Below, piece after piece: positions 69 to 45,400 of a stretch of DNA of 64,000 nucleotides. The notes under the pieces are model-generated. The model searched no databases and was not told the origin of the DNA. It saw nothing but the letters and a program-made list of their open reading frames with translations. Each line of letters starts with the position of its first letter. Positions within the stretch are counted from its first letter, which is position 1. Both the position numbers and the translations under genes were made by a program. The DNA lies in the IMG/VR virus record IMGVR_UViG_3300024252_000004, positions 1-64,000 of that record; one strand, written 5' to 3'.

Positions 69-628
69 CAAAAGATAAGCTAAGAAAAAGAATGTCAAGG
101 GTTGAAGCTACTCCGCTTCAGGCAAAAGTTGATCCCTTAAACAATAACAGAAGAGGTAAAAATCACGTTGACATGAGCACAGAAGAGGAGCTATCTCACG
201 ATGATTTCTTTGATTTCGAAAGGGATCTTGTTGACATCAAGTCATCCAGAAGCTTAGCTGCTGATGCTCCTGGCTCTCAATCCTTCTTTACTACAGACTC
301 ATACACTGGCAATACTTCGGCTGTAGATGAGAAGCCTCAGCCATCTTTTATTATGATGGAAGAGGCTGAAGAAGAAGAGGAACCTGTGCCTTCTTTCGGA
401 ATGATATTGGATGAGTTAGATAATGAAGAGACTAATAACGAAATTATAGATGAAGCGCTCGATGCTGCTCATCTCGTTGGCTTTGCGTTTGTCCGATGTG
501 GGGCAACAAAAGGCAATGGAGAGAGGTGCAAAAGACAGGCTCCGAAAGGATTTTCAACCTGTTCTATAGGCGCTCACAGGAAGCAGGAAGCTTCTATTAA
601 TAAGGAGAGGATTGATGAAGACGGATGA
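65..628 (+). CDS. Hypothetical acidic protein with C-terminal Cys/His zinc-finger-like motif (DUF5763-like)
   Basis: C-terminal CGATKGNGERCKRQAPKGFSTCSIGAH; acidic, low-complexity N-terminal part. Family call is from recollection of the motif. Confidence 0.6.
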   Translation: MTKDKLRKRMSRVEATPLQAKVDPLNNNRRGKNHVDMSTEEELSHDDFFDFERDLVDIKSSRSLAADAPGSQSFFTTDSYTGNTSAVDEKPQPSFIMMEEAEEEEEPVPSFGMILDELDNEETNNEIIDEALDAAHLVGFAFVRCGATKGNGERCKRQAPKGFSTCSIGAHRKQEASINKERIDEDG

Positions 629-848
629 TACGACATATAAGACCTCTGACTTACCTTTAGCAGCGTACCTTTCTATGAGGGGTCTAGCACTCTTAAAGGC
701 AACTAAAGGCAGTGACGGTAAATTTGAGTTTCAATTGGATGATCCTGAAGATGTAGCTGACATTCTCGCTGTCGAATATCTTAATAGTGACTGTAGTAAA
801 TTCGATTACCACGTTCGCAGAATTAAAAAGTTTCTATACAGCAAGTAA
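615..848 (+). CDS. Small phage protein, DUF5659-like
   Basis: TSDLPLAAYL...GKFEFQLDD pattern recalls DUF5659. SD AAGGAG at 602-607 favours ATG 615 over TTG 612. Confidence 0.6.
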   Translation: MKTDDTTYKTSDLPLAAYLSMRGLALLKATKGSDGKFEFQLDDPEDVADILAVEYLNSDCSKFDYHVRRIKKFLYSK

Positions 849-5590: not shown

Positions 5591-5775
5591 AAGAACTTAA
5601 ATACTTAAAAATCGTTATCCCTCATCTTGATAAGGACATGCGTAAGCTCGCCCAGTTTTTAGCTGCCGGTAAGATTACTATTGATCTATACGAGTTAGAG
5701 TCTATGATTAACCCTGAGAAATTCGAATTCCCTGAAGAAGAAGTTGAAATGGTTGGAGTGGATCTGAATGAATAA
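5587..5775 (+). CDS. Small hypothetical protein
   Basis: GTGA overlap with the upstream gene and overlap with the downstream start; fills the operon gap. Confidence 0.55.
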   Translation: MKELKYLKIVIPHLDKDMRKLAQFLAAGKITIDLYELESMINPEKFEFPEEEVEMVGVDLNE

Positions 5776-19121: not shown

Positions 19122-19730
19122 ATGGCTACATATCCAAAATCAGGTAGCATTCTTGACAGCACCGTACATACCTCACTATCAACTCAGATAGTGATCATGG
19201 TTAACAATGAACCTGTAGGTGCGGTACAGTCTTTACAGATTGAGCAGAACAGACAGACTGTCCGCGTAGGCGAAGTTGGTTTCGATGGCACAATCGAGAT
19301 CGTCCCGAATGCCAAAACTGAAATCACACTTCAGATCGAAAGAATCGTTTATGATGGCTTGAGCATTACGGAGTCCTTTTCAAGAGGCTTCCAGAATATT
19401 CAGGCTCAGAGGATCCCATTCGACATTGTAGTAATCGATCAGTTCAGCGGAACCGGTAACGATGCTACTATCACAACATTCGTTAATTGTTGGTTTGAAT
19501 CATTGAGCAAGCCATACAGGGCTGAGCAATATATCATTACTGAGAACTGCCGTGTCGCTGTAGAAACAATTCATACACTCAGAGGCGGAGAAGCAGTTGC
19601 GCTCAGTCAGGGTGTAGGTGGCGGTAGGCAGCTTGCCGGTACACAGTTTGATGACATTGAGCTTGCGGCTGACTCTGGTTCCAGAAGAGGTTCTCTCGAC
19701 TTCCCAGGTCTAATCTCCGCATCCTTCTAA
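19122..19730 (+). CDS. Tail tube protein
   Basis: Follows the sheath; 202 aa; VGAVQSLQIEQNR...PFDIVVID...FVNCWFES...ITENCRV tube pattern. Confidence 0.8.
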   Translation: MATYPKSGSILDSTVHTSLSTQIVIMVNNEPVGAVQSLQIEQNRQTVRVGEVGFDGTIEIVPNAKTEITLQIERIVYDGLSITESFSRGFQNIQAQRIPFDIVVIDQFSGTGNDATITTFVNCWFESLSKPYRAEQYIITENCRVAVETIHTLRGGEAVALSQGVGGGRQLAGTQFDDIELAADSGSRRGSLDFPGLISASF

Positions 19731-23584: not shown

Positions 23585-26500
23585 GTTTCAACTTATCATT
23601 AAACAAAAGCATCGAGAATATTCTAACGGGAGCCCTATCTGGAAAGTATCCAGTAGTGGGTCGAGGTTTGCGTATTGATCTCGGTGAGTCTGCCGTAACC
23701 GCGACACAACCTGCATCAAGAAACATCGTAGTGCAAGAGCCTCAGGCATCTATCATTATAAAGAAGAAAGAGTTCTCGAACTTCAAACACCTTAATGATT
23801 TGCAGTGGCTTGACAGAACAGAGAAAATGTATCTCCGCACAGTCAAAGCTCTCTTTGCATATAAGTGTGCTCAGATTAGAGCCTATGAAGCATTGACAAA
23901 ATTTGAACAAGTTTTCGCCACAGATCACGAGGTCCCTCTTGAGATTTTCTCAGACATCCTCAGCACTGCCAAGTTCTTTGAGACCACAGACCCTAATGCT
24001 TTCATCACGAATTTCGAAGCAGCAACCCTATTTCAGAATGCCCTCACCAACTCGTTTCCTGCTAAGGAATATAACGACGTTAGAGATGATATCCTTAAGA
24101 TCGCAAAGCGAGGAGCCTTCCAGTCTTCACTTCCATTTACGACTTGGATTGTAGACCCTGACAATATTGAGAATTTTGGCACCGGGCCGGGAACTGGATC
24201 AATGGAACTTGGCACATTCACCAACTTCTCCACCTCCTGTGACCTTAATGCATCACCATCGAGTGCTTCTGTTTATATGGAAGACCCATATAGGATCACA
24301 CACATAACCGAATCAGAGATTGAACTTGCGATTGAAGAGGCGCTCTATGGTACCCTTGGAATCATCAATGAGATCGGAATGGGTACGATTGATTTAGCAA
24401 CTTTTGATGCCAAAAGTGTTGTGGGTGCTGCGTTTGAAATAGCCGGAGGTCCGCTGGATACTGGCATCGACACAGACTACATTAGAAATCAGTTAAGATA
24501 TAATTACATGGGCAAACCATTCATCAATGCTGGCGATGCTATCAGCGTATTCATTAGAGGAAATAAAACTCTTCAGGATTATGATGATGGGCACCTCTTT
24601 AATGAAGATTTGCTTGCTATCGATGAAACGATTCTTGAGGCGGAGAGGTACCTCTACACCGATAAGAAGATTAGCTTTGAGGATTACAAAAAGATTCGTT
24701 CTCTTCAAGAGAACTCTTTAGCTATGCAGCAGGTATATGGTGGAGTTGTTCTTAAAACCTCTCGCTCATTCTCCAGTGGATTCTGGTCTCTCAGCTTGGA
24801 ATGCGAAGACAACATGAAGTGGCTTGACTGGTCACGCTTTATGATTGAGCCTGCTCTACAGGATCCGCAGGGAATCCTCGAAGATCCATTAACTCCATAT
24901 GAGATTAGGACAGACGCATTAGGAATTCCTCTTGTTGGAGAGGGGCCTAAGCTTATTGATGAAAACGTTGAGCTTCTAAACTCTGGGCTATTGGCTTATG
25001 ATTCAGGCATCTTCAATGGGCAGTATGCCACAGAGACTAACCTGCTGCAAGGGCAATATAACCAGACCGGTTCTGCATCTGGAACTAAGATTATGCAGCA
25101 CGCTAATGGCTTTGTATATAGATGGAAGACCGGCATTATCACAGCTACCGCAGGAGCACTACTTAGAGATCCTTTGAATGAAAAAGATATCACCCTTAAA
25201 ATGTTGAATCAGACATATGGCCTGTCTGTAGCAGAAGATGTGCTTAACAATCTTGATGTTGCAAACGTGCTCAGCTTGCTCATTGTTGGGCAACCATACA
25301 ATGTAGAGTCCTTTATGGAGCAAGCATATCAAGCTCATAACATCAGCAAAGCTACGTCTGCGTCTTCACTGTCCCCGACCGATCCATTAACTTCAGTTAT
25401 CGATGTCATTAAAAGGCAGAACATTCGAATCGGTGGCTTCCGACCATACAGAATGATTACCTTGAGTCAAAGCTCTCTTGAGGAGACAGCTACGTCTAAC
25501 CTTATTAGAGGAGAACTCAATGAAAAAATTAAGCTCCTTAGGCAGAGGAAGATCGAACTCTCCACACTAATTGGAAGACTTAGAACTTCTGACTCTGAAG
25601 GTAACGCTGTTTTTATCAGGACAATGAACGAAGAACTTCAGGCTGTGCAGTTGGGTATTCAAGAACAAATCAAAATTGCAAACTCTACTACACTTGATAC
25701 AGCGGATCTTCTAACATCCAATTTCAACCTTCTTGGAAGGAATCGTGTGTTGCCACTGACTGGTAACTTCTCTGCGGATTATAATATCACCAGAGCGATG
25801 ATGATTGTTGGTGCAAGAAGAAGAATTGAAGACGTAAGGCTTAACCGTGACGACAACCTTTTCATTGTATCGGATCAGTACGAAGAGAACACAGACATCA
25901 GAGCTTACATCCTGAAACTCAGAGATTCAAATTACAGAATCTTCGATGGCAACTTCATCTCAATTCTTGAGAAGTGCCAACATGCAACCAAGTTCATTAA
26001 CTTTGAATTCTTCTGCAACCCGCAGGGGCATCTTGAGTTCCGTCCGCCACAGTGGAACAGGACTCCTCTATCTGTGCTTGAAAGATTATTCCAGATGAGC
26101 GAAGAGGAAGGCAGAACTGTCATTCCCCCATTCCTTACTCAAATGTTTGAGGATCGTTCATCCTCATTGAGAAGAGAAGTCCACGGACATAATATACAGA
26201 TTGTGCTCCTTTCGCTGCTGCTTGGCAGGTACCCTGATAGTTCTTTGATCCCTAACTTCAGAGACCCATCTCTTGTGACTATTTGGAAAAGAGGTAATGA
26301 GGCTATCACCAGAGCATACCTTAGATTCTTTGGTGTTAACCCTGAAGGTTTAGCATCCGGTGGAGATAAAAAGACTCTGCTTAGGGCAGGCTTCACAGCA
26401 ACGGTGCTTGGCGATCTCGTCAACACAGGCAATCAGTTAATTGGAGATGGACTATCTGTAAGCTTCGGAACCGGAGAAGATGGCGATACCATCAACGCAG

Positions 26501-28371
26501 ATACTTCAACAATCCTCGGCATCTTTGATCCTATTTTTCAAGAAGAGAAGAACCTTGTAAATAACTTACTCACAACCTCAATGAACGTTGAGGGTATTCC
26601 TGCCATTGAGTATGCTACGGCTGCTGGGCTGAATGCGGTAAGAGATGAGTTCAGAAAGGTAGGCGGATTCGATGCAGCCTCGGGAATCATTGGCAACACC
26701 CAGAGATTCTCTGAGAAAGATTTTGTCTTCTTTGCGGGGCATGATGAGGGCCGAAGGGCTGGGCTAATTGAGATGTATCTCGATGAATTAGCGTCTACAA
26801 TATCCAGCAGAGATAGGCTCGTAACAATCCTCGTCAGAAACGAGGAGAAAGCTACTGAGCTTGATGAGATTAACTCCATTCTTTCTGGTGAGTTTACAGA
26901 GGCTACAGGTGGTGATGATGGTGAGTTCGAAACTCCCATCTCGGACTTCATTGAGGGTAACATCATTGAACCGCTTGAAAAGACAGCCACAGCCATCAAG
27001 ACAATTAAGGATATCTTTACTGGAGAGGCAACAAAGAACTCATTGTTCGACCATCTCGTTGAGGATGATACAAGAAACCTTGTTGGCCCAGGCTCAGGAA
27101 GAAGATTCATCATTGAGGACCATGACATTAGATCATGCACATTCACCGAGACACCTCCAGAATTCAATCGAATTGATGTTGTTGGCGATGCACCATTAGG
27201 ACTTGGTTCGGCTTTGCAGTCAGAGTTTGAAGACAAATACTTCTGGGCAGGAGCTACTGATTTTGATTCGTGGAGACAGTTCGGTTACATAAGTGGTGGA
27301 ACAAAACAGCTTCCATTCGCAAGTGATCCTGAGCTTCAGTGTAGACCTTATGCGATTATGGAATTGCAACTTCAGAGAACCCAGATCAATAGGGGGGTAG
27401 TCACAGTAAACGGAAACGAATTCTATGCTCCGGGTGATGTTGTATTCATCAGAGATCAAGGCATGCTTTATTATGTCACGAGTGTATCGCATAGCTTTGC
27501 TTTTGGCGGCGCCTTTGAGACGCAGTTAAATCTTGAGAACGGACATGCCCCAGGTATCTATCTTCCAAGCCCAATTGATATCATCGGACAGGAGCTTACA
27601 AAGAACTTCCTTGAAGACGGCGCAATGCTTGTATACAGAAACCAAGATGGTGATGATTCATACAGAGCACTACAGCCAGACAGCAATCTTCTTTTCCCAG
27701 CAGGATTACAAGTTGAGGCTCCGGATAAAAATGTCAGCACTTTCCTTGATTACAAAAACAATCAGGTAAAATACACAAACATGATGATCGATCTTAATAC
27801 GATCACGGTTGGAAATAGAATGATTCTCCTCAGAGCTTTCGTAAAGGGAGATGCAGATGTTGCTGATGTAACAAAGAGACTTCAGGTTGTAAGACACCTC
27901 TTGGAGAATCCAATGCAAATCAGCCAGACAAATGGTGCTGGCGGAGATGATCTTTTTGACCTGAATGTGAATCTGAATGTAAATGTTGGTAGCTCCAAAG
28001 AGCTTAACACGATGATTCTTCCTAACGGTCTTGCGGCATCTCCAGTTCCATCTGATAGGATTCTTGAGCAAATAGTTTATCTTGACGGAACGGAAACTAC
28101 TGAGTTCTTATGCCTGAACTCTCAGCTATTAACTGGGGCTACACTTAAGGATAATATTAAAGCTCAGATTGATAAGCTATCTGTTGATGCAGGCAACTAT
28201 GCAGCAGTCTTTCCTAAAGGTGGACCCAAACAGAGTAGTTGGTTAGACCTTAGAGATGACTTAACAAACATTACGCGTATTATTGAAGTTGGAGTATTAG
28301 ATGTGCAAGCTGCTATCGAAGATGCTTCCTCCGAATCTGGAGTATCTGTAAACGTAGACCTTGGATTGTAA
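23581..28371 (+). CDS. Baseplate hub protein (gp27/gpD-like), greatly enlarged
   Basis: Hub motifs VYGGVV...LECED, FEFFCNPQGHLEFRPP, GVVTVNGNEFYAPGDVVFI...YYVTSVSHSF...TQLNL. Confidence 0.7.
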   Translation: MSFNLSLNKSIENILTGALSGKYPVVGRGLRIDLGESAVTATQPASRNIVVQEPQASIIIKKKEFSNFKHLNDLQWLDRTEKMYLRTVKALFAYKCAQIRAYEALTKFEQVFATDHEVPLEIFSDILSTAKFFETTDPNAFITNFEAATLFQNALTNSFPAKEYNDVRDDILKIAKRGAFQSSLPFTTWIVDPDNIENFGTGPGTGSMELGTFTNFSTSCDLNASPSSASVYMEDPYRITHITESEIELAIEEALYGTLGIINEIGMGTIDLATFDAKSVVGAAFEIAGGPLDTGIDTDYIRNQLRYNYMGKPFINAGDAISVFIRGNKTLQDYDDGHLFNEDLLAIDETILEAERYLYTDKKISFEDYKKIRSLQENSLAMQQVYGGVVLKTSRSFSSGFWSLSLECEDNMKWLDWSRFMIEPALQDPQGILEDPLTPYEIRTDALGIPLVGEGPKLIDENVELLNSGLLAYDSGIFNGQYATETNLLQGQYNQTGSASGTKIMQHANGFVYRWKTGIITATAGALLRDPLNEKDITLKMLNQTYGLSVAEDVLNNLDVANVLSLLIVGQPYNVESFMEQAYQAHNISKATSASSLSPTDPLTSVIDVIKRQNIRIGGFRPYRMITLSQSSLEETATSNLIRGELNEKIKLLRQRKIELSTLIGRLRTSDSEGNAVFIRTMNEELQAVQLGIQEQIKIANSTTLDTADLLTSNFNLLGRNRVLPLTGNFSADYNITRAMMIVGARRRIEDVRLNRDDNLFIVSDQYEENTDIRAYILKLRDSNYRIFDGNFISILEKCQHATKFINFEFFCNPQGHLEFRPPQWNRTPLSVLERLFQMSEEEGRTVIPPFLTQMFEDRSSSLRREVHGHNIQIVLLSLLLGRYPDSSLIPNFRDPSLVTIWKRGNEAITRAYLRFFGVNPEGLASGGDKKTLLRAGFTATVLGDLVNTGNQLIGDGLSVSFGTGEDGDTINADTSTILGIFDPIFQEEKNLVNNLLTTSMNVEGIPAIEYATAAGLNAVRDEFRKVGGFDAASGIIGNTQRFSEKDFVFFAGHDEGRRAGLIEMYLDELASTISSRDRLVTILVRNEEKATELDEINSILSGEFTEATGGDDGEFETPISDFIEGNIIEPLEKTATAIKTIKDIFTGEATKNSLFDHLVEDDTRNLVGPGSGRRFIIEDHDIRSCTFTETPPEFNRIDVVGDAPLGLGSALQSEFEDKYFWAGATDFDSWRQFGYISGGTKQLPFASDPELQCRPYAIMELQLQRTQINRGVVTVNGNEFYAPGDVVFIRDQGMLYYVTSVSHSFAFGGAFETQLNLENGHAPGIYLPSPIDIIGQELTKNFLEDGAMLVYRNQDGDDSYRALQPDSNLLFPAGLQVEAPDKNVSTFLDYKNNQVKYTNMMIDLNTITVGNRMILLRAFVKGDADVADVTKRLQVVRHLLENPMQISQTNGAGGDDLFDLNVNLNVNVGSSKELNTMILPNGLAASPVPSDRILEQIVYLDGTETTEFLCLNSQLLTGATLKDNIKAQIDKLSVDAGNYAAVFPKGGPKQSSWLDLRDDLTNITRIIEVGVLDVQAAIEDASSESGVSVNVDLGL

Positions 28372-30769: not shown

Positions 30770-33700
30770 ATGGCATCATTTGTAGAAGCATTCGTTCCCC
30801 CATTCTCATTCGATGAGTGCGTACAGTACGTCCTCGAATGTGAGGGCAAACCTTCGTCTGAAACCGGTGCTGGAGATCTTGATGTTATTTTTCCAGAGTT
30901 CCTCGGAGACTGGCTTCCACTTGCTGGAGGCTCCATCGTCAGGTTCGATCAATCTAATTGGGGCTTGTCTGCCGATGAGAAGGTAGATTCTCTTGTCGGA
31001 AAGAGGCTGGCAGACCTTGGCGATCTGCAACTCAAGAATACACTCGATTCATTAAATGAATTCAGGATGACGCTGAATCGACTCCTTTTCAAGATGAGGG
31101 AGTTCAAGGTTCTTGAGTCCGGTGCTTCATCTAAGCCGCCAAAATTATTCTTCTCTTACTACCAGGGTGATGATGCTCTCCTTGATGACGAGAAGTCAAG
31201 TTCAAGCATTACGAGGATGTGTAAGTTCAAGCACATCCCCTACACTGCATTTAATATTGCTCTATCCTTGGTGGTACCAGCAGAAGAAGAGGATGACGAT
31301 TTTGGAAACGTCGTGGGAGCTTCAGGAAAGACCTTCCGTGAGTTGCTTAAGGCATCCGAAAAACCAAAGGAAAGCGACATCATTGATCTCGTCCTTGAGA
31401 TGTTCGCTGTTTTCAATATCAATGAGGACGACATTGTAAAGTCCAGAGGACCAGCAACAGAGGGCGGGTACTATACCATCTTTGATGAGAAGCTTTACAT
31501 TAAAATGCCTGACATAACCGGACGAGACTCCGCAGGCTACTACTCTGACATCTTTGACAAAGATTCTCACTTCTACATTGAGGCATCGAAAGGAAGAAGG
31601 AGCTACGGTAGGGGAGAATTCCCACTGATTGCTCTGCCCATCCTTGCAACGGTAGATGATGCCTCTGTGCCTTTGCCTGACACTGGCGACGTAGAAATTA
31701 CTATCGATACCGCAACAGATGCTAAAGACATTAAGAATGCATATTTATCTATCCTGTCCGTAGGTCAGACTGTTGAATCTTCAAAGAGGACGGTCAGATT
31801 CTACTCTGATAGCTTAGAAGTATTTTCCATTCCGATGCTTACCATCAATGATTACTTCAAGAACAGAGAGCCTACTATCGAATATGATCTGTCAACTAAG
31901 ACGGATGATATCGAGTTCTACATCAAGCCTGAAGAGGGTGGTATTAGTGTTGGTTCAGATAAAGAGAGTGCCGAAGAGACAGGCGTTCCGTATCTCGGCG
32001 GAGAATATTCTGCCGAGAGTTTCTTTGGTGAAAAGAATAGGGCAGAGATTGTCCTGACAGACTCAGAGAGCCCGGAAGCTGTAAACAAAAATGACAGAAG
32101 GTTCTTCTCTCCAAAAGCATACGGAGCGGTGCCTGTACTTGCAGGTGTTAGACCAAGAGTGCATCAGACAGTTCCAACAAAATGGATAGAGATGAATAGG
32201 GCAGAAGAAGGAGACGACGAAGATAAAGTTAGACTCCTTTTTGATCATTCGAAATTTGATGTGGTTAACTTCGATGCACTCAGCAATGAAGCATCTTTCG
32301 CCCTCTACTTGGAAGACGGCAATGGTCAAATCATTAAGGCTGCGGGTGAGAACATTACAATCTCTACTGGTCTGCCAACGGTTACAAAGGTTTCTCCTGA
32401 CGGATATAAGGGATCAGATGAGATCCTCGCCACATTAAAAGGAACTATCCTTCGCTTCTCTGGCGAGGGATTAACGAATGCAATTGGCATCAACGTTACG
32501 ATCAAAGGAACTGATTCAGTTACCACTACATTGTTCTCCGATCCTGCACTGGTCTACACTGGAAGTTCCACGCTTTCAACATTAGAGTGCAGCGCTCAGT
32601 TATCCTACATTGGTTTGGAACCTGGGCAGGAATACGAACTTTCGCTTCTTAGTATCTCTGGGGAAAGTGGGAATGGTAATTGCGTCTACGTGAATACAGC
32701 AGAGGGTGAAGAGCAGATCAGTAAGTCTAAAGAGCTTGCCAAGTTCAGGATCGATGAGTTCTCAGTTAGACGATTCAAATCAGGATATGTGAGTGAAATC
32801 CCTGTTCTCACAGAGACAAGCGCAGTCTTGCAATTAAAATCAAAGCAGAGATTGTTCACGGGAAATCTTGATATCTTTGCATACATTGGAATTACAGACA
32901 AAGATGTAGCTACCGCTATTGGTGGCGATGATGTGCTTGAGGTATCAGCAGTTGGCAAGACATTCTACGTTCCTCATAACTTAGAGTATGAATTTTCAGC
33001 ATCAGCAAGCGCCGATTTCTCAAGAAAATTCTTTAACGCAAGAGCTGACCTATCAATTCCTGGTTCCAGATATCAAAACTATAACCTTTTCCCATTGCTC
33101 AATGCACCGATTGGTTCTGCGATTATCTTTTACAACAAAAGGATCATAGAAGATGCTCCGACAGGAGTTGTTACCCCAGAAGATGGGGACTATGCAATTA
33201 CATGGCTCGGGCATAATGATGGAAGAAAGCCATTCGTGCTTGGACCGACGGTTCTTGGTTTGGTTGCGGAGCAACCCGGTGGAGAAGGACTCACTTCTAC
33301 ATTCACAATTGAAGAGAAAGATGCGGAGATTAAAAAATCATTTGGCGGAGCAACTCCTGACGTTGGAAGCATTTCAATGTTCCAGAACCTTACGAAGCTT
33401 GGCATCGTATTCTCATGCTCAAAAGGTTCAAACCTCAGAAGGCAACTTACGTTCTATATTGGGAAAACAAAACTGTCTGGACTTTCTGAAAAAATTAAAG
33501 ATCTTGGTGGTGGCAGATTCCTTGCTACGTTTGATAATGTATCTATCAAGGAAGAGGGCGTGCTTGAGGTACGCATTGAGAAAAAGGATAAGGTATTCAG
33601 ATATACCTCAAGTGGAGTTGTAGCTAAGAGAGCCTCATTCGGAATCGACGCGGGCACATACGCATTCAATCAGGATGATGGTGAGCTTACTCTCGGAGAA

Positions 33701-36700
33701 AGCTCCGTCAATTTCTATTCTGATGGTGCAGTAGACACAGATACAAATGCAGCGGATCTTATGATCCCGGGCGGAACATCTGGAGTTCTATTGAATCAGG
33801 CAACATCAACTGAGGCTGAACATAAATTCTTGTATCCGTTAACCATTAGACCTAACGTGTCAATGAAGATTAACATCAGCAATGTAACGTCACTTATCGG
33901 TGGGGCTTCAAACGAAATAGATGACTTAGAAAGATCTTATATGCAGGTTGACTCTGGGGAGGTAATGACGGGACGATCATTCTCTATCAGCGAGACTGGC
34001 TCAGCAGTTGGATATCTAAACTGGGACCTCACGAATGCTGCTACTATCAAGTGCAACGTTCCTGAAATTACGTTAATCAAACCAACCATCGAAGCAGCAA
34101 ATGGATTCACTCCCGACAAGATCAATGGTTCTTTATTGACAGCCGGCAGTGAGATTAAGATTGAAGTAGAGAATTGCAAAAAGAACTTCAAGGTTATCTT
34201 TAATGGCTTGTTCGCAGCGAAGACCAAGGGTCCGCCGCGACGCATCTCTCGTGGTAAGTATGAAGCTGTCATCACAGTTCCAGATGCGGTCATAGCATTT
34301 GACTGTATTGAGATGTGTGTGTCTACTGCCAACTCCCGAAGGCTTGGAGCTAAGCTCGCCATGGGAGAAAAATTCGTTCAGAATATCGGAAAGAACATGA
34401 CCGATAAGCTTGAAGGATTCATGAAGGACAAGACACCTGATATTGATGACCTAAAAGGGCTCATCAAGAAGTTCCCTCTTAGGTTCCTTCAGGTCAAACT
34501 TGACAACTCATTGGTACCGCTTGACCTTATCAAATCTTTCTGTGATTTCTCATGGCACTTAACAGCGGATCTCAAGATTGCGCTTAACGGTTTCCAAACA
34601 CTGCTCATCCCTATTCAGGTTATCCTTTGTATCATCGACGTTATCTGTTCTCTGTTACATCCAGGCAAACTGGCAAGTGCAGTCATCAGGTTGTTCTACT
34701 GTCTCTATGATCTATTGTTACTGCTTCCACAGATCTCTGTGCCAGTTATGTTCTTCAGCCTCATACTTCACCTCTTGAATCTTCTTGAGTGTGTTATCGT
34801 TAAGATCATTGAGACCGTTGTGGCCATCAATGAAATCATAAAGGCAATCGAGATAGCGACGCAGCAGCAGAACCTTTGGGACGCAATCATCACTCTTGAA
34901 GAGGTTATTAGCGAGTATCTTTTTGAATTGAATGTGGACTTGGATGTCCTCGAACCTATCATTTCAATCCTTGCAATCTTCCTACAGATTCTTGAATTGA
35001 TTTTCAACTTCCCATGCCCTCCGGACGACGGCATTGGAGATAAGAGTTGCGGTATTCAAGGCTCTATGCTTGCAGGTATGGTAGCAGGAAAGGTATCTCC
35101 TGGCGATGGAGAATATGATCCGGAGGCTTTAATTCCGGTTGCTCAATATTATACCAATGATTCAATTGAGGATATGATCAGCTCAAACTCTGGCAGTAGC
35201 TATGAAGAGTATAGTCTCGGAGACTCAATTATTGATCAAGGTACTGAAAGCTCATACCTGGAAGCAATGGATATTGATCCTGAGTCTCTAAGGACTACAA
35301 ATGGAGAAGACTTTGATGCTGCGTTCTCTGTATCATTCACTAAGTCAACTAAGGGGCTTGGGCAGCCTACTCTTGTCAAATTCAAATTCAAAGACAAACT
35401 TGACAACTCTGGGTTCTTTAAGAAAAAGGTTCTTGATCCTCTTTTGAATAGGGATGCTCCATTCCACCTTCTCGATAATGACAATGGCACATTAAAGATC
35501 GCTTCTGGTAAGGGCAACTTCATCAGTCCACTTGATGGCACCAAGTTCATCACAAAGGATGGAGAGACCGGTTCAGTTAAGCCTCTTACACTCACCTTCG
35601 AGTTTCCAATTATGGAACCTAACCCTGACACAGGGATGCTTGAAGAGACAGGTATCGAAGAGGTCACCAGAACATTTGATGATATTCCTAAAATGGCAAT
35701 AATGGATGAAGAGGGTAACCTGTACTTCATTGAGCCTGACGGAATTGAATTCGATAGCGACAACAATATTGATCAGATCAAAGCAAGAATTATAAATGAC
35801 ATCTCTGCACCTAAGTTTAGGTTCACAAGGGATGATCAAGAAGTTGATACCGACGATGACGATGTGCCAGATGATGAAGGCAGAGTGTTTGACCTTCCTC
35901 AGCTATTCTTTGTGGACATGAGATCGATTGCTGACGAACTTCAGAACTCTTGTTACGCAGCATCTTACAACGAGTTCCTGCTTGAGAACGAAGAGACTGG
36001 TGACACAGACGATATCGCAGACATCGTAGAGGGAGCGGTTGACTGTATCGAAACATACAGAGCCATCATCAGAGATATGATGAAACAGGTTAGGGAGTCA
36101 CTACAGGCAGGAGAAATTCCTGACCCAATGGATCTCGAAGCTATTGCTGAAGCACATCAGGCTCTCATCGATTGTTTGACTGACTCTGCTGATAGCATGT
36201 GTAGATTTGTTATGAACCCATTAAACTCTTCCTTCTTAATTGAGGAAGATGATGATGAGACTCCGCTCGCAGAGTACCCGGAGGTGTTTGATCCTTCAGA
36301 CCTCGATAATATCGATGTTGAGCAGAGCGGACCATCCTTCACTGGAGCAAGAGAGTTTGCTGGCGGTATTGGTGATAGCCATATTCTGGATATTGGAAAA
36401 GTAGCTACCATTAGAGTTACGCCTCGTGACAGCTATGACATAGAGATGCCAGGAGACTTGTCCGATAAAATTAAGATTAACATTCTGTCTGACAGTACAG
36501 GTAGTGCAATGATTCTTAAGAATGATGACGGTACAACTATAGAACAGAATGGCTCCGACTACTATGTTAGGATTAGTTCTACCAACGAGGGAGAGGTTAA
36601 GCTTGGAGCTTCAGTCTGTGGAAGGACTATTGCAGCGGTTACATATGCTGGAATTACAACCACAGAGGAAGAGGAAGAAGTTGACTGTGTGCCAGATGCT

Positions 36701-36871
36701 CCATCCGAAGTAGAGGAAGCTGCGGCCACAAGGCCAGGAGCACTTGTTAAGGTCGACAGAGTCTTAACACTTTACTACGTAAGACTTGCAAGCACCGCAA
36801 CTATTAAGCTTGATGGCGGAAAGACTGCAACCAGTACAGCTCAGACCTTCGGAACCGCATTGGAGAACTAA
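30770..36871 (+). CDS. Giant virion protein with IPT/TIG- and Big_1-like Ig domains and a hydrophobic helical block
   Basis: 2033 aa; PTVTKVSPDG..G IPT-like motif (~32370); Leu/Ile/Cys-rich block at 34580-35015; invasin-like ATIRVTPRD...YYVRISSTNEGEVKLGASV near the C-terminus. Confidence 0.55.
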   Translation: MASFVEAFVPPFSFDECVQYVLECEGKPSSETGAGDLDVIFPEFLGDWLPLAGGSIVRFDQSNWGLSADEKVDSLVGKRLADLGDLQLKNTLDSLNEFRMTLNRLLFKMREFKVLESGASSKPPKLFFSYYQGDDALLDDEKSSSSITRMCKFKHIPYTAFNIALSLVVPAEEEDDDFGNVVGASGKTFRELLKASEKPKESDIIDLVLEMFAVFNINEDDIVKSRGPATEGGYYTIFDEKLYIKMPDITGRDSAGYYSDIFDKDSHFYIEASKGRRSYGRGEFPLIALPILATVDDASVPLPDTGDVEITIDTATDAKDIKNAYLSILSVGQTVESSKRTVRFYSDSLEVFSIPMLTINDYFKNREPTIEYDLSTKTDDIEFYIKPEEGGISVGSDKESAEETGVPYLGGEYSAESFFGEKNRAEIVLTDSESPEAVNKNDRRFFSPKAYGAVPVLAGVRPRVHQTVPTKWIEMNRAEEGDDEDKVRLLFDHSKFDVVNFDALSNEASFALYLEDGNGQIIKAAGENITISTGLPTVTKVSPDGYKGSDEILATLKGTILRFSGEGLTNAIGINVTIKGTDSVTTTLFSDPALVYTGSSTLSTLECSAQLSYIGLEPGQEYELSLLSISGESGNGNCVYVNTAEGEEQISKSKELAKFRIDEFSVRRFKSGYVSEIPVLTETSAVLQLKSKQRLFTGNLDIFAYIGITDKDVATAIGGDDVLEVSAVGKTFYVPHNLEYEFSASASADFSRKFFNARADLSIPGSRYQNYNLFPLLNAPIGSAIIFYNKRIIEDAPTGVVTPEDGDYAITWLGHNDGRKPFVLGPTVLGLVAEQPGGEGLTSTFTIEEKDAEIKKSFGGATPDVGSISMFQNLTKLGIVFSCSKGSNLRRQLTFYIGKTKLSGLSEKIKDLGGGRFLATFDNVSIKEEGVLEVRIEKKDKVFRYTSSGVVAKRASFGIDAGTYAFNQDDGELTLGESSVNFYSDGAVDTDTNAADLMIPGGTSGVLLNQATSTEAEHKFLYPLTIRPNVSMKINISNVTSLIGGASNEIDDLERSYMQVDSGEVMTGRSFSISETGSAVGYLNWDLTNAATIKCNVPEITLIKPTIEAANGFTPDKINGSLLTAGSEIKIEVENCKKNFKVIFNGLFAAKTKGPPRRISRGKYEAVITVPDAVIAFDCIEMCVSTANSRRLGAKLAMGEKFVQNIGKNMTDKLEGFMKDKTPDIDDLKGLIKKFPLRFLQVKLDNSLVPLDLIKSFCDFSWHLTADLKIALNGFQTLLIPIQVILCIIDVICSLLHPGKLASAVIRLFYCLYDLLLLLPQISVPVMFFSLILHLLNLLECVIVKIIETVVAINEIIKAIEIATQQQNLWDAIITLEEVISEYLFELNVDLDVLEPIISILAIFLQILELIFNFPCPPDDGIGDKSCGIQGSMLAGMVAGKVSPGDGEYDPEALIPVAQYYTNDSIEDMISSNSGSSYEEYSLGDSIIDQGTESSYLEAMDIDPESLRTTNGEDFDAAFSVSFTKSTKGLGQPTLVKFKFKDKLDNSGFFKKKVLDPLLNRDAPFHLLDNDNGTLKIASGKGNFISPLDGTKFITKDGETGSVKPLTLTFEFPIMEPNPDTGMLEETGIEEVTRTFDDIPKMAIMDEEGNLYFIEPDGIEFDSDNNIDQIKARIINDISAPKFRFTRDDQEVDTDDDDVPDDEGRVFDLPQLFFVDMRSIADELQNSCYAASYNEFLLENEETGDTDDIADIVEGAVDCIETYRAIIRDMMKQVRESLQAGEIPDPMDLEAIAEAHQALIDCLTDSADSMCRFVMNPLNSSFLIEEDDDETPLAEYPEVFDPSDLDNIDVEQSGPSFTGAREFAGGIGDSHILDIGKVATIRVTPRDSYDIEMPGDLSDKIKINILSDSTGSAMILKNDDGTTIEQNGSDYYVRISSTNEGEVKLGASVCGRTIAAVTYAGITTTEEEEEVDCVPDAPSEVEEAAATRPGALVKVDRVLTLYYVRLASTATIKLDGGKTATSTAQTFGTALEN

Positions 36872-38589: not shown

Positions 38590-38652
38590 GACTACACTCT
38601 TTCTATTATTTTCTCGAAGCTAAACGAGTGTATCTACAGAAAGGGAGTTGTG

Positions 38653-39084
38653 ATGTCTTTTGATTTGAAAATTGTTGGCGGTGATATAGCTATCAGCACC
38701 AGCGGTGATGTAGATATTGTCTTTAACAATGCAAAAATGAAGCAAGACATCGTTAAAATCCTATTGACTAAGTTAGGCGACAACAGATATCATCCACAAT
38801 ATGGTAGTGACATAGGTGTTTTGCAGATAGGTAACGTAGCTGATGCGGAAATTTTAGAACTTGATCTACAAAGTTCCGCAGAAGAAGCAATTCGTAAGCT
38901 CATTTCGTTGCAGCGTCAGCAGTCCAAAAGACAGTTTTTATCTCCCGCAGAAGTAATTGTAGACATTGTTGATGTTTCTGTTGCCAGAGATATTAATGAT
39001 CCACGAGCTTGGAACATTTTTCTCTCGGTCTTAACACAAAAGCTCACAACTCTGACCGAAGCTGTTCAGCTTAGGATTATTTAA
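38653..39084 (+). CDS. Baseplate wedge protein, T4 gp25 / P2 gpW-like
   Basis: KQDIVKILLTKLG..RYHPQYGS motif; SD AGGGAG; directly before baseplate J-like gene. Confidence 0.85.
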   Translation: MSFDLKIVGGDIAISTSGDVDIVFNNAKMKQDIVKILLTKLGDNRYHPQYGSDIGVLQIGNVADAEILELDLQSSAEEAIRKLISLQRQQSKRQFLSPAEVIVDIVDVSVARDINDPRAWNIFLSVLTQKLTTLTEAVQLRII

Positions 39085-39094: not shown

Positions 39095-42000
39095 ATGGCA
39101 AACCAGAGAACCTTCAGCCAAATTGTACAGTCAATGATGGAGAGGCTAAGACTAACACAGCCGAACTTGGACACAAAAAGCGGAACTGTTTCTAGAGATT
39201 TGTTTGTTGACATTCAGGCTGATGAATTTGACAGGCTCTATAAATCTATGAAGATTGTGTCTAACAAGCAAAGCCCGGAACTCGCAAGAGGCCGGGACAT
39301 TGATCGTTGGGCCCGTAACTATGGTTTGCTCAGAAAATCTGGAGCATTGGCTAACGGTATCGTGGTCTACACGACCAATGAGCTTAACTCTGATATCCCA
39401 ATTCCTAACAGTACAGTTAACACAGGAAAAAACGGTTATCAGTTTAAAACAATCGGCAGCTATGTTATGTCTGTCGCAGAGAAAAACAAATATGCTGCTA
39501 ATGCTAACAGGCTAAGATCTGCACTGAACCTTGCAGGCATTACAGATTCATTCGCGATTGAAGTCCCTGTCTCTGCCACAAGAGTTGGCACCAGTGGAAA
39601 CATCGCACCACTTCAGATTGTCAGTTCCGATCTTGCTGACGGGTTAAAGGTAGTTAACTTAGTATCCTTTAGCGGCGGAGCAAATTCAGAATCTGATGCA
39701 GCATTTAGAGCAAGGATCTTTGCTGTATTCAGTGGAGCTAACACGGGTACCGCATCGGGATATAGGAATGCCGCCCTCGGAACGAGTGGTGTCTTAGATT
39801 CCCTCGTCGTAAAACCAGGAAGCACTTTGATGCTTAGAGACGGCACAGAGACTATCGAAGTCAATGATGGCTCCTTTCGTATCCTTAACTCGGGAACAGG
39901 CGGAAAGGTAGACGTATATATCCTTGGTAAGAATCTTGAAGAAATCACTGAGTCTTATATCTACTCTGATTTGTCAGGAATCGGAGACCCTACAGATGAA
40001 AGGAATGATTATATCCCAGGACTGTTTGGTGTCGACAATTCTTTGACCTCAGAAGAGAGGAGAGTCCAAGCTTTCGAAGAAGGGAAAATTCCACTTCAGC
40101 CTGTGGATACCATTGTCTCTGTAGTTGGAAGTAGCTCAGGTATTTTTGCAGAAGCAATCATTGATGCTGACGGGAATCTCATAGGAAATTATGAACTTGT
40201 TAAAGATGAGAACGTAGAGACTGGCGGTAGTCCATTCGGGTTCGATAAAGTTAGATTCATTTCAAATATTAAAAACGTTGATGGTGAAAGCATTACTAAA
40301 TCTGCCATCAATAGTGTTGATGCGCTAAGATTCTCTGATGTTAAGCAGATTGAATCTGTTTATCAGGATGTGCAGATCTCCGGAGAGAATTCATCACGAG
40401 CACCCTCTGACAGATCAATCATTATTCTTAACCATACACCTATCGTCAGCGTGAGTCGAGTCTCTAACGTATCAACTGGAGAGGTTTATGCTATCGAGAA
40501 CCAGAACTTTGATTCCTCAGGTCTAAATGAGAGCGGAGAGATCTCGATCTCTGGTAAGACTCTGCCATCCAGAGCTGACGTTTTAAGTGTGGACTACACA
40601 TGGCGACACATGTTTGATAACTACATTGATTTCAATGGAGCAGAAATTGTTAGCATGTTCGAAGATGAGGACGTATCTGATTCGGTTGACTGGGGCGTTG
40701 GTAATGGAATCACAAATGAACTTTCAATAATCACACAGACAGATGATGGATTCGAATACACAATCGAAACAGATTTCTCAATCAGCAGAGTCCTTTCTGC
40801 ATTCTTTGCGGAAGAGGTTACTGCGACAGTAGCGTTGGTTGCTGACTCTGATGGTGTGGAGGTTAAGGGTCTTGAGCTTGAAGCTACAGACTCTGAAATT
40901 GATAACCTTATCTCCGTTACTGACAGTGATAAGGTAGAAGTCTATGACACTATTGATGCGAATGGAACCTTCTCAAGTAGGACTATTTACTTGCCTGACG
41001 ATACATCTGCCGTAGTAGGTGAGGAGCTTGTTGTCTTCTATAACAAGGTTGAGCTATTCGACATTGATGATGGAAATGGTTCATTCTCTGATACTACAAT
41101 TACCCTCCCATCTCAGGATATCTTGGAAGGCTCCAGCCTCTTTGACTCTGTTGATGAGGCATTCCTTTCCGAAGAGGATGTCTATGTTACATATGTAGCT
41201 GAGATTAACGAATTAATACCGACACTATCACTAACCTCGCTACCGATCAATGGAAGTGGTACGAGCAATGCACTGTTTGATTCCTCATTAACTTCCCTTG
41301 TAGGCAGTAACCAGCCTGTCTTCTTCGTTTACGATGAAGGTAGTGCAGTGATTGATATTTCAAGGTTTGGCCCTGCCAGGGTTGGAGTTGAAGTATCAGG
41401 CACAATCAAGCCGGGAAGAATTAAGGTAGTCGGAACTACCCTGAAGAGATATGAGCTAACCCTTACAGCAGGGCTGTCTATTTCCGGGCTCACCTTTGAT
41501 ATCGAGTCTGAATTAAAGGAACTTATGAATCTTTCATCTCTGCCAAGCTCATTGTTTGTAGCGAGAGTAGACAGCGTTGTAGGACTTGACTCAGATGTTG
41601 AATACGACTTGGCTGGTCAGCTATTAATGGATAACACTTATAGCTTTGGAGTAGCCGGACTTGATGATACTCTTGATGCGACAGAATTTACCCTTCCATC
41701 CACTGAGAACAATGACGAGATCAGTCTATCTAGTGGAGAAGAGGTTAAGGTTTCTGTTTTGATTGGAGACTCTAATGATTTCGAGACTCTATACTTCGGA
41801 GCAGACATGGAAGTAATCACAGACAAAAGATTCGCAAGGATTAGCACTGTTTCAGTATCATCTGGATTCAGAAGCTCTGCCGGAACTCTTGTTGGCACAG
41901 CAACTGTGACTCCGGTTAATCAACCAGATGATGGACTTACTTACAACGTAGTTTACAACTTTAAAGCTCCAACTGAAGGCGAAAGGATTTCCGTCAAGTA

Positions 42001-42406
42001 TAATCTGAATAGACTCGTAGGAACAGTGACAAGTAATATTGAAACTGTCCGACCAATCACCGCAGACGTTCTTGTGAAAGAAGCTTTCGAGATTGATATT
42101 GATGTTGCAGGAGAGATTGTCATCGCAAGTGATGCGGAGTCTGGAAGTCAGACCGTACTTGAGAATGTGATCAGCGCTGTAGTCAATCTTCTGAACACTT
42201 CATCCTTGGGCTCATCAATAGACTACTCTGATATCATTACGGTAGCAGCCGGAGTAACCGGAGTGGAGTCTGTAAATATTTCCCAATTCAATGAATCTGG
42301 AAAGCAGGGAAGAAAAACTTCTATCAGATCTTTGGACAACCAGAGTATCGTAGCGGGAAGCGTAAGCTTTACTGCCTCTTCAAGACAAGATTTTAGAATC
42401 ACTTAA
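39095..42406 (+). CDS. Baseplate J-like (gp6/gp47) wedge protein with large insertion
   Basis: RTFSQIVQSMMERL, GGANSESDAAFRARI, C-terminal IDYSDIITVAAGVTGVESV. Confidence 0.85.
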   Translation: MANQRTFSQIVQSMMERLRLTQPNLDTKSGTVSRDLFVDIQADEFDRLYKSMKIVSNKQSPELARGRDIDRWARNYGLLRKSGALANGIVVYTTNELNSDIPIPNSTVNTGKNGYQFKTIGSYVMSVAEKNKYAANANRLRSALNLAGITDSFAIEVPVSATRVGTSGNIAPLQIVSSDLADGLKVVNLVSFSGGANSESDAAFRARIFAVFSGANTGTASGYRNAALGTSGVLDSLVVKPGSTLMLRDGTETIEVNDGSFRILNSGTGGKVDVYILGKNLEEITESYIYSDLSGIGDPTDERNDYIPGLFGVDNSLTSEERRVQAFEEGKIPLQPVDTIVSVVGSSSGIFAEAIIDADGNLIGNYELVKDENVETGGSPFGFDKVRFISNIKNVDGESITKSAINSVDALRFSDVKQIESVYQDVQISGENSSRAPSDRSIIILNHTPIVSVSRVSNVSTGEVYAIENQNFDSSGLNESGEISISGKTLPSRADVLSVDYTWRHMFDNYIDFNGAEIVSMFEDEDVSDSVDWGVGNGITNELSIITQTDDGFEYTIETDFSISRVLSAFFAEEVTATVALVADSDGVEVKGLELEATDSEIDNLISVTDSDKVEVYDTIDANGTFSSRTIYLPDDTSAVVGEELVVFYNKVELFDIDDGNGSFSDTTITLPSQDILEGSSLFDSVDEAFLSEEDVYVTYVAEINELIPTLSLTSLPINGSGTSNALFDSSLTSLVGSNQPVFFVYDEGSAVIDISRFGPARVGVEVSGTIKPGRIKVVGTTLKRYELTLTAGLSISGLTFDIESELKELMNLSSLPSSLFVARVDSVVGLDSDVEYDLAGQLLMDNTYSFGVAGLDDTLDATEFTLPSTENNDEISLSSGEEVKVSVLIGDSNDFETLYFGADMEVITDKRFARISTVSVSSGFRSSAGTLVGTATVTPVNQPDDGLTYNVVYNFKAPTEGERISVKYNLNRLVGTVTSNIETVRPITADVLVKEAFEIDIDVAGEIVIASDAESGSQTVLENVISAVVNLLNTSSLGSSIDYSDIITVAAGVTGVESVNISQFNESGKQGRKTSIRSLDNQSIVAGSVSFTASSRQDFRIT

Positions 42407-42416: not shown

Positions 42417-45400
42417 ATGGCGTTAAGACCAGTAGCATTTTCAATACCGTCTACCACTGAACTAAAGGTAACATTCTCAGAGAACCTTTCTGAGTCTCTG
42501 TCCTCAATACATTTTGAGGTCGAGTCTCTTAGTGGATCAGTGCGCGATCTTGAAGTCACTGGCGTAACCATTGCAGGTTCTGTAGCTCTTATCAAGACAA
42601 GGCCACAAGTCGCAGGTAACTATTACCTCCTTAAGTTCCTTGACGCAACAGATCTCAACTTCATATCCAACAAAGGGTCCAGGCTCCTTGATGACTCAAT
42701 CTCACGAGAGCTATTCTTTGTTGGAATTGATAACGTCAATCCTATCCGAGACAGGATCTATAGAAGGATCCCTGACCTGTTTGAGCTTGAAGGCTCTATC
42801 CTTAAGAACATTCTTTCTGCTCAGGCAAATGAACTATTCAAAGCACAGAAAGATATCGGCTCTGTCCTCTCTAACAATTATGTTTCAGAGACAGTAGTTG
42901 ACGAGTTCAGGACAAGATCGGCTGGAGCTTTCGACAGAATGGCTAACGAGAACGTCTACGAGGTCGTAAGAATAAGCAAGAAGCTCACCGGTGAAAGTAT
43001 CAAAACTGATACCATTGAGTTCAGCAGCGATGTGTCCGCTCCAAGAATGGAGATCATGCCGGTTTACCCTGTGCCTCTTCAGCAGGTTATCATTGAAGAT
43101 GAAGAGATCACAGTTGACTCCGAAGGCAATAGCTTTGAGGGATACCTATTAAGTCTTGCAAAAAAGAATGTAACAAAGATCCTTTCCGTATTGCTCATTC
43201 GTAGTGATGACAATGAAGACTGCGATGGTGATATCGGAATCAATTATGATGTTGAAAGATACAAGTACGCCATCACAAGCAACAGATACGATCAGGATTA
43301 TGGTTTTAATTTGCACACTCTTGAGTCTAACCAGATTCTTCTGTCCGAGTTCGGCAACCTTCCGAGACCTACGATCTATGATACGATCATTGTAACTTAT
43401 GCGTACAAGGATCTTGGCAGGCATATCTTAATCGATCAGATTGAGGTGTCCAGAGTTGAAGATGCAATAAGCGAAGCTGTACCAAGTAGCGCAACCTCAT
43501 TCTTCCTTGATAATGCTCCGGTCGTTAACTCCTCAAACAATGTGGCTACCTCTGGCGCTCTTACCTTTAGTGTTAGCGAGAATGACGGAACAACTCCTGA
43601 TGAGTTTGTTACAGAGATTACATTTAATGCTTCAAGGCTTCCATCTTTCCCTGGAGAGTGGTCATGTGACTACGAAACCGGAGAAGTCTTTGTGTATGGT
43701 AAGACCATCAACACTGAGGGTACGGGAAGAAATAATTACATTGTCGATTACCTATACAGAAAAGAGTTCAAGGAAGACCTTGACTATTCTATTAGCGACC
43801 AAGACTTGGTTGCTACACCAGACAGAGAGCTTGCGAACAAAGAAGCAGAAATCTTTATTAGATATGACTACGTCTTTGCAGAAGGTACTGACTACGAGAT
43901 GTCGTCTCATATTGAGGTGATGCCAGAGTTTATGGAGAATAGGCTGAATACATCGTTCAGCGTTATTCCCCAACACACACCTGTGACTGATGTGTTCAGG
44001 ATTCTTAACCAGACAACTGGAGAACTATACACGCCCATGTATCACAGCGACTCTGAGATCTTTTTCGCGGGGAATAGATCTCCAGAGATTAAGTCTGCTG
44101 AGGGCGAGAAGGCTAATTTTCAGAGAGTCAGAAACGAAGAGCTTGGAGTAATCGGAGAGTTCATTGCTCCAACACACACTGCTAAGATCACATCTGTTGC
44201 ATCAAATAATAGCATTCAATTCTCCCCAGGAATTCCGAGCGAACTTATCTCTCAGAACTCCAACGAGTATTACTTTAGAGAGCTTGAGAATGATGACGGA
44301 GACTATGTCGCAGAAGATGTACAGATTAAATTCTTCGGTGATGAAGACTCAGGCGGATTGATTACATCCGTGGGCATCAATGTGTCTGCATCTCCGCCGA
44401 CCAGAGGCTCCACAGTTATCATTGGACCAAGAGCGTTCGTCATTCACCTTGACAACGAAGGCATCTTAAATAAAAATAGTGATGCTCTCGGCTCGCTCGT
44501 TAACACTTCCTTTGTCGCTACTGACAAGGATGTCTTCGAGAATGAAAGGTACTTTGAGCCTATCCTTGTGAACCCAGGCTTTAGCTCCACAACATCAGGT
44601 GGAATCAGCCAAGCACTCACAGCAGATAAAGGAACTGATTTCTACTCCAACCTCGAAAGATTGAGAGTTGTGGGAGACTACCTTGTCGATTACAGATACG
44701 GAATTGCCTATGTAGCTGTAGGTTTGGAACAGGATGTAAATGTATCTACAGCTCATTACGCTTACGCTACACATAAGACTGCCGGAAAGAATATTCTTAC
44801 AGCATCTTCTGTGGCAAAGAAGACTAATGGTCCAGAGGACTTAACTCTTGCAACAAAGGTTTACTCAAACTACGGCCATAATGTCTTCGAGATAACCATT
44901 CATGATATTGAAGATGGTCTAACTTTATACGACGGAGTTACTGAGGCAGTTGATCTTAATGATAACCTTGCTATAATCTGTGAGGTTAGAGAGGACTATA
45001 CAGTTGTGGTTCCTCATAACATCCTTGCGATCAATAGCATCTTTAAAAGATCAGATCTTGAAGGTGTTAATTTAAACGCGAGTGATGAGGCTGACCGCAG
45101 CCCTGGATACTCAGCGGAAGATTTAACAACTGCCACCAAGAACGGCGGAAGAAACCTTTGTGACTCATCTTTCTGCACCTTCACAGACAATGTAATTGAC
45201 CTTAAGAAAGTTGTTGAGAAAAGAGCGTACATGAATGCTGACGGTGATTTCGAGTTCACCATTCTTGATTCAGATGCGAACACATTTGTTAAGTGTGTAC
45301 GCTCATCTACGCAGCTTGAATTCTTCTCAGACGAACTGAACATTACCAAGGTCGATGATCTAGAGGTAGTTAGCGTGGCTCTTGACGGCAGCGAGGTTAC

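Follow-up and report, generated by a model that had tools for sequence, protein, structure and literature searches.

How the DNA of a contractile-tailed phage crosses the inner membrane after the envelope has been pierced is only partly understood, and for T4 and T5 the present explanation invokes hydrophobic stretches in the tape measure protein. The locus described here raises this question for a huge marine phage, represented by an IMG/VR virus record of 395,127 bp that CheckV rates as complete (IMGVR_UViG_3300024252_000004); the first 64 kb of the record (64,000 nucleotides) were analyzed and are called the window below. Directly after a spike-like gene, the window encodes an acidic protein of 2033 amino acids (aa), P0001, that contains a hydrophobic, Cys-bearing block of helices. 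Judged from sequence, this block is a previously undescribed domain family that appears confined to huge phages and would fall within a known functional kind, the virion-borne membrane-active penetration proteins. Sequences and structural models together suggest that the block protein probably helps the tail to cross or grip the host membrane. Our more specific reading is tentative and is given somewhat less than even weight: P0001 would be a virion protein of the baseplate centre whose shielded block inserts in the host membrane on contraction.

A first-pass annotation, made from the letters alone, had described an otherwise very acidic protein with a hydrophobic helical stretch, five or six Cys and no signal peptide. 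That description holds. The open reading frame (ORF) is intact under translation table 11, its product has an isoelectric point of 4.44, and Kyte-Doolittle means over 19 residues reach 2.6 between residues 1270 and 1418, a value not approached by any other tail or baseplate protein of the window. The N-terminus has no hydrophobic segment. The interval originally given, 34580-35015, corresponds to residues 1271-1415; five Cys were counted inside it (C1287, C1293, C1311, C1341 and C1416) and two flanking it (C1258 and C1427); the domain bounds used here (Table 1) were set by conservation together with the helices of AlphaFold2 (AF2) models.

Homologues were sought with word-indexed and exhaustive hidden Markov model searches. 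Full-length homologues of P0001 are 2006-2115 aa long, share 34-79% identity with it and lie on contigs of up to 414 kb; the large subfamily to which they belong spans ~2000-2700 aa, on contigs of ~400 kb. The block is the best-conserved part of the protein (column identity of 76-82% vs. 35-55% elsewhere) and is present in 246 representative proteins at E<=1e-3. A second subfamily, of 650-850 aa, matches the block alone, at its own residues ~70-250, and IMG/VR holds 120 such short-form relatives on contigs of up to 480 kb. Aligning the two subfamilies with hhalign gave a probability of 99.9% (E 3e-33, 155 columns), with nothing detected outside the block, and P0001 aligns across the entire block domain with 91 other sequences. 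By these alignments the conservation is far beyond chance. Because the block is the sole segment common to both subfamilies, it is the core of the protein, and the N-terminal 1200 residues are a lineage-specific addition.

Outside this group of phages the block was scarcely found. Neither Pfam nor PHROGs matched P0001, the spike, the ORF downstream of P0001 or ten diverse block-family proteins, with the exception of one homologue discussed below, and the ESM Atlas contained no usable match for P0001 or P0131. Judged by the baseplate J protein, Bacillus phage G is the closest cultured relative; no equivalent gene occurs in its baseplate row, and the block was not found when the phage G genome and the uncultured LR745208.1 were searched with a profile. 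Among 185,579 species genomes there were two block matches only, both on large contigs of metagenome-assembled genomes (MAGs): L086 and L087, of 145 kb and 383 kb, from the bins of an uncultured gammaproteobacterium and of a Chitinophagales MAG. Both contigs most likely belong to phages and were placed in the bins of possible hosts. Since they are the only matches in bacterial genomes, a secretion-system origin was rejected.

Across the 92 aligned block sequences, C1293, L1308, P1320 and C1416 are invariant and C1287, C1311 and C1427 nearly so. Conserved Pro-containing turns separate the helices, and the block can be recognized by a signature consisting of a C-I-I-[DE]-V-[IL]-C helix, an N-P-x-K turn, an R-L-F..C helix, a Pro turn, a very hydrophobic third helix and a terminal P-C. 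In all, 15 Cys columns are conserved in the C-terminal half of P0001, and 11 or 12 invariant or near-invariant Cys are located in helical parts. C1287 and C1311 (near window positions 34628 and 34700) are replaced jointly in two homologues, by Ser and Gly in P0040 and by Ala and Ala in P0043, which suggests that they form a disulfide across the first helical hairpin; in a further homologue, P0034, C1311 alone is lost. Conservation extends to the very end of the protein, where Q2025, G2028, L2031, E2032 and N2033 were invariant in the first alignment of 13 sequences from the large subfamily, and this C-terminal tail may be a docking or processing peptide.

Membrane-insertion energies were estimated on a crude translocon scale that ignores position, with the values of Hessa et al. 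(2005). Four adjacent 19-residue segments of the P0001 block have the lowest energies of the window, +1.3 to +3.5 kcal/mol. Of the 34 proteins examined from the ~700-aa subfamily, 31 have a segment at or below 0 kcal/mol and 25 have one below -2, the minimum being -8.3. The homologous third helix of this subfamily, nearly devoid of polar residues, reaches -5 to -8 kcal/mol across a stretch of 19 residues. As far as sequence can tell, the hydrophobicity of these relatives is of transmembrane grade and clearly sufficient for insertion.

Structural models were obtained with AF2 for residues 1-1200 (mean predicted local distance difference test, pLDDT, 84.0; predicted template modelling score, pTM, 0.72) and, from 86 sequences, for residues 1160-2033 (pLDDT 84.9; pTM 0.78). 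Five helices are predicted in the block, at residues 1257-1295, 1298-1317, 1320-1365, 1370-1392 and 1395-1412. Solved helical bundles superpose as one unit on the range ~161..656 of the second model, so that block helices 3-5 and the amphipathic helices downstream form a single bundle there. The remainder of P0001 is largely beta-sandwich, with a total of ~8 immunoglobulin (Ig)-like domains. No enzyme fold was seen in the models, and structure searches returned no specific match for the N-terminal alpha/beta region or for the beta-rich middle domain.

The first-pass annotation had placed IPT/TIG-like and invasin Big_1-like domains on either side of the block. This proves right at the level of the fold, in domains that Pfam does not detect in P0001. 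Searched against AFDB clusters, the upstream Ig-like array matched IPT/TIG and bacterial Ig-like multi-domain proteins (E 1e-11 to 1e-9), the top clusters being named IPT/TIG domain-containing proteins, and PDB and Atlas searches gave matches of the same kind. One domain of the array superposes on the IPT/TIG domains of EBF1/EBF3, NFAT and plexin over 80-93 residues (Z 7.7-8.2; root-mean-square deviation, rmsd, 2.2-2.9 A) and has the E-set Ig-like fold; the IPT/TIG profile (PF01833) had no match in P0001 at E<=10. The C-terminal Ig domain superposes on invasin (1cwv), FdeC, InvD and InvE over 95-98 residues (Z 10.6-11.9; rmsd 1.7-2.0 A). Here too the Big_1/invasin profiles (PF02369, PF09134) found nothing in P0001; one ~700-aa homologue matched Pfam Invasin_D3 at 2e-7 and Big_1 at 6e-5.

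The P0001 gene sits in a single uninterrupted row of tail and baseplate genes on the plus strand, between the spike and a gp25-like gene, and the spike ORF ends 7 nt upstream of it. Its slot after the spike, which had been singled out on first inspection, is conserved in ~80 related IMG/VR loci, where the order is tube initiator, a protein of ~1650 aa, a spike of ~680 aa, block protein, a partner of ~550 aa, gp25-like protein and J; the same order was found in NCBI, JGI and Logan contigs. In total, well over 100 huge phages have the domain at this place in their baseplate row. In the ~80 loci the spike orthologue lies immediately upstream of the block protein or with a single small ORF in between. 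An acidic helical ORF of ~117 aa occurs between the spike and the ~700-aa block protein in about half of the IMG/VR loci (e.g., L006:7625-7975; also L008-L011, L013 and L015). It could serve as a small adaptor or chaperone; the window lacks it. In one locus (L076:8001-13545) the block protein is followed almost directly by J, with no partner or gp25-like ORF between them, an arrangement that may reflect a rearrangement or an assembly problem.

The 795-aa spike has no match in Pfam or PHROGs; its protein-language-model features lie at 0.93-0.94 to the Phage_base_V and Gp5_OB clusters, and the structural neighbours of its N-terminus are likewise of gp5/gpV type. No PAAR gene had been seen in the window, and none exists in the 395-kb genome as far as profile searches go: PF05488 had no match in six frames of the whole genome at E<=1, under conditions in which control genomes did match. 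The spikes of gpV type can carry their own apex, so the missing PAAR is not anomalous by itself. P0001 as a PAAR-like tip was ruled out; it has no PAAR motif, and a comparison with Pfam, PAAR included, returned 0 families even at E<=10. Searches against PDB sequences, with profiles of both halves of P0001 and with the 1596-aa, 795-aa and 603-aa products as single sequences, gave nothing meaningful.

The ORF that follows, of 572 aa, begins within the stop codon of P0001 (TAATG), and the genes of block protein and partner frequently overlap at their stop and start codons across loci. The partner represents a separate conserved family, in which a hydrophobic helix near residue 500, toward the C-terminus, is also conserved, and none of the 46 family members (the 572-aa protein and its orthologues) matched a Pfam family, DUF1795 included. 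It appears from gene overlap and conservation to be a translationally coupled partner of P0001.

From these observations we tentatively propose the following course of events. P0001 would be a structural protein of the baseplate centre, made together with the 572-aa partner and assembled beside hub and spike. Its conserved core would have four parts, namely the helical block, the beta domain, the amphipathic helices covering part of the block and the invasin-like Ig domain; the arm of ~7 Ig-like domains would have been added in this lineage, with weak binding to the cell surface as its probable role. Fraser and colleagues are said to have found in 2006 that Ig-like domains of tailed phages occur almost exclusively in virion proteins. 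In the free virion the hydrophobic helices would be held soluble by the amphipathic ones, possibly stapled by disulfides between invariant Cys. Contraction of the sheath would drive the spike region into the envelope and release the block, which would then insert into the host membrane and either anchor the tube or contribute to a DNA channel.

Such a division of labour is suggested by the putative tape measure. Its position is held by a 603-aa, Gly/Ala-rich helical ORF in which hydrophobicity scans revealed no transmembrane-like or hydrophobic segment and nothing scored below +7.5 kcal/mol on the insertion scale; because the tape measure would be without hydrophobic segments, the channel or anchor function may reside in another protein, encoded beside the spike. 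For a 395-kb phage, 603 aa at 1.5 A per residue would correspond to a tail of only ~90 nm. P0001 itself was ruled out as the tape measure, given that its gene follows the spike and its models are largely beta-sandwich. A wider form of the proposal is possible and rather more doubtful. It holds that the block is a new latent membrane-insertion domain at the spike or hub of the whole clade of 200-480-kb phages, with an intramolecular amphipathic cover, disulfide staples and a partner of its own, and that the channel or anchor role has moved out of the tape measure.

Several results weigh against membrane insertion by P0001 on contraction. The 603-aa ORF is a putative tape measure assigned from position and composition only. 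A complex prediction for the block (A7) with the partner (A8), which the first-pass annotation had suggested as a chaperone, returned "no answer" with a score of 0.00, which speaks neither for nor against binding. No cultured phage was found to carry the domain: in 50,697 phage records there was no match by tblastn (P0001 and P0131) or megablast (12 kb). The match to colicin, translocon or ejection-protein folds that the first-pass annotation had proposed to look for did not appear: the C-terminal model, compared with PDB, BFVD, Atlas and AFDB clusters, retrieved only Ig-like domains and generic bundles, and no pore-forming, translocon or ejection fold rose above the helical-bundle noise level, in a search conducted within an 874-residue model, which lowers sensitivity for the block. 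The best helical matches were designed bundles at Z 12-13.6, which is at the noise level of the tool for helical models (~13) and has no functional significance; PaxB scored Z 9.8, below that level, and no colicin was among the top 50. The top helical match, a designed pH-triggered membrane-lysing bundle, was treated as coincidence. Finally, the block helices of P0001 are only marginally hydrophobic on the translocon scale, and the AF2 bundle reads equally well as a permanently buried core.

The last two points lead to the strongest alternative, a purely structural baseplate protein whose hydrophobic helices are a permanently buried core or oligomerization interface, held by disulfides and never in contact with a membrane, and whose Ig arm decorates the baseplate or binds glycans. 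The confident joint bundle into which AF2 places block helices 3-5 with the downstream amphipathic helices is what such a protein would show, as are P0001 helices that include His, Asn, Glu, Asp and Lys and stay above 0 kcal/mol; the abundance of invariant Cys suits a rigid extracellular structure locked by disulfides, and the fold searches yield generic bundles. However, a third helix as hydrophobic as that of the ~700-aa subfamily is unusual for a soluble core, and the first hairpin, the most conserved part of the block, is modelled with lower confidence (pLDDT 61-69) and lies outside the aligned bundle. The Pro-containing turns between the hydrophobic helices also resemble those of membrane hairpins. 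We regard a permanently buried core as possible, if on the unlikely side. The initial suggestion of a soluble protein with insertable helices therefore stands in part: the shared bundle and the membrane-grade relatives favour it, whereas the marginal helices of P0001 and the equally good fit of a buried core do not.

Less probable still, and in our judgement improbable, is an integral inner-membrane protein of the infected cell that is never packaged, acting as an anchor or scaffold for hub assembly or as a factor in exclusion or lysis. Co-translational insertion of four to five consecutive hydrophobic helices is conceivable, both large flanks would end up on the same side if the number of spans were even, and the ~700-aa relatives combine transmembrane-grade hydrophobicity with a block near the N-terminus. 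In P0001, however, 1250 acidic residues precede the block and no N-terminal signal or anchor does. IPT/TIG and invasin-type Ig domains are typical of exposed virion parts and not of cytoplasmic domains, the invariant Cys suggest an oxidizing location, AF2 packs part of the block against soluble helices, and the gene is embedded among structural genes and coupled to them. A pore-forming effector or toxin injected from the spike in the manner of a type VI secretion system (T6SS) or extracellular contractile injection system (eCIS), depolarizing its target instead of conducting DNA, is very improbable: the slot after the spike frequently encodes T6SS and eCIS cargo, and a hydrophobic helical domain with a coupled gene recalls effector/chaperone pairs (PMC7773334), but the element, which has a terminase gene, is a complete phage of 395 kb, the P0001 gene is found throughout the clade in conserved synteny and not as variable cargo, no PAAR, prePAAR or Eag/DUF1795 family was detected, and, with only two matches among species genomes, both on large MAG contigs, the gene is not part of bacterial secretion loci.

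The coordinates of P0001, its parts and its neighbours are collected in Table 1. A match to the terminase large subunit lies at the far end of the linear record (G000:C1:393834-394316), a place that would immediately precede the window in a circularly permuted genome, so that the window opens the structural module. The two long ORFs after Baseplate_J are probably the gp7-like wedge and fibre proteins of the clade; relatives of the 3218-aa ORF have faint Laminin_G_3 matches. Two small ORFs among the structural genes upstream of the sheath, at 1781-2185 (134 aa) and 5768-6235 (155 aa), have clear transmembrane-like segments. The G+C content falls to 0.345 at 60001-62000, vs. ~0.43 elsewhere in the window.

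Table 1. Position of P0001, its domains and neighbouring tail and baseplate genes in the 64,000-nucleotide window.
Feature	Position	Strand	Residues of P0001	Basis or remark
Sheath	15901-19110	+		
Tube	19122-19730	+		Two small ORFs between tube and 603-aa ORF
Putative tape measure, 603 aa	20864-22675	+		After sheath, tube and two small ORFs; Gly/Ala-rich helical sequence
Tube initiator	22685-23584	+		
1596-aa protein between tube initiator and spike	23581-28371	+		Probable baseplate hub, by position only
gp5/gpV-like central spike, 795 aa	28375-30762	+		Language-model features and structural neighbours
P0001, 2033-aa acidic protein	30770-36871	+		Intact ORF, table 11
N-terminal alpha/beta region	30875-31759	+	~36-330	AF2; specific to large subfamily
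~7 Ig-like beta-sandwich domains	32198-34324	+	~477-1185	AF2
IPT/TIG-fold domain	32369-32704	+	534-645	VIA-align
Hydrophobic Cys-bearing helical block, family-defining domain	34538-35017	+	1257-1416	Conservation and AF2 helices
Beta-rich middle domain	35147-35917	+	~1460-1716	AF2, pLDDT mostly >90
Three amphipathic helices	35918-36214	+	~1717-1815	AF2; invariant C1728, C1759, C1802, C1811
Invasin/Big_1/filamin-like C-terminal Ig domain	36209-36790	+	~1814-2007	VIA-align
Conserved C-terminal tail ..Q..FG.ALEN	36842-36868	+		Low pLDDT
Conserved partner ORF, 572 aa	36871-38589	+		Start overlaps P0001 stop (TAATG)
gp25-like sheath initiator	38650-39084	+		PF10934 (below cut-off); phrog_2669, 2e-10
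Baseplate_J / gp6-like wedge protein	39095-42406	+		PF04865, 3e-21; phrog_6, 5e-36
3218-aa ORF	42417-52073	+		After Baseplate_J
1516-aa ORF	52122-56672	+		After 3218-aa ORF

The same sequence is present in many seawater metagenome runs, and the clade is large and environmentally widespread, with more than 100 IMG/VR contigs and occurrences in many seawater metagenomes. If the block does insert, it would be a new solution to envelope crossing and a previously unrecognized core component of contractile-tail genome delivery, and it would provide a handle for annotating a gene now called hypothetical in every huge-phage genome of the clade. Should the block prove to be no more than a buried core, it would remain a clean family marker for the baseplate module of the clade. 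With ~160-200 residues, the domain is small enough for the membrane question to be addressed directly at the bench.

Of the known systems, the closest in proposed action are the membrane-inserting parts of tape measure proteins, followed more loosely by the T6SS effectors with transmembrane domains and their chaperones (PMC7773334); P0001 belongs to none of these groups. P0001 shares with PAAR proteins and T4 gp5.4 the gene slot directly after the spike, here in a PAAR-less genome; it is, however, twenty times larger and without the PAAR motif. The prePAAR effectors of the T6SS, with their Eag chaperones (PMC7773334, PMC12881460), are likewise spike-associated, have helices that need shielding before firing, and offer in the adjacent gene a candidate shield. 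P0001 differs from them in having no PAAR or prePAAR region, a block that is internal and not N-terminal, a partner without DUF1795, and a place on a phage as a core gene instead of cargo. Identity with a prePAAR effector and Eag pair was rejected, there being no PAAR, an internal block and no Pfam family in the partner or its 45 orthologues. ClyA, XaxAB/PaxB and colicins A and Ia are soluble bundles of helices in which a hydrophobic hairpin stays buried until a trigger causes its insertion, as is proposed for P0001, but the conserved Cys of the P0001 block are not a feature of those families.

Phage proteins that open a path for DNA offer further parallels. The ejection proteins of podophages (T7 gp14-16; P22 gp7, gp16 and gp20) refold into a trans-envelope channel with membrane-inserting helices (PMC8954989). 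In contrast to P0001, which is encoded in the baseplate row and has Ig-like domains, they are kept in the capsid, and their genes lie with those of the head. T5 pb2 and other siphophage tape measures are expelled and insert hydrophobic helices in the envelope for the DNA path (bioRxiv 10.1101/2022.09.20.507954; PMC10038345). P0001 as proposed here would also be an expelled virion tail protein with membrane-inserting helices; it differs from pb2 in tail type, gene position and architecture, and no homology between them was detected. Predicted transmembrane helices are reported to be common in tape measures, and in T4 gp29 a helical-bundle domain harbours a transmembrane helix, the released protein having been proposed to form an inner-membrane conduit after contraction (bioRxiv 10.64898/2026.03.06.709160). 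P0001 has no sequence or specific fold similarity to gp29, is encoded after the spike and is mostly beta, with its ~8 Ig-like domains; what the two have in common is that each is a contractile-tail protein with an amphipathic helical bundle that houses its hydrophobic helices, in P0001 according to the AF2 model.

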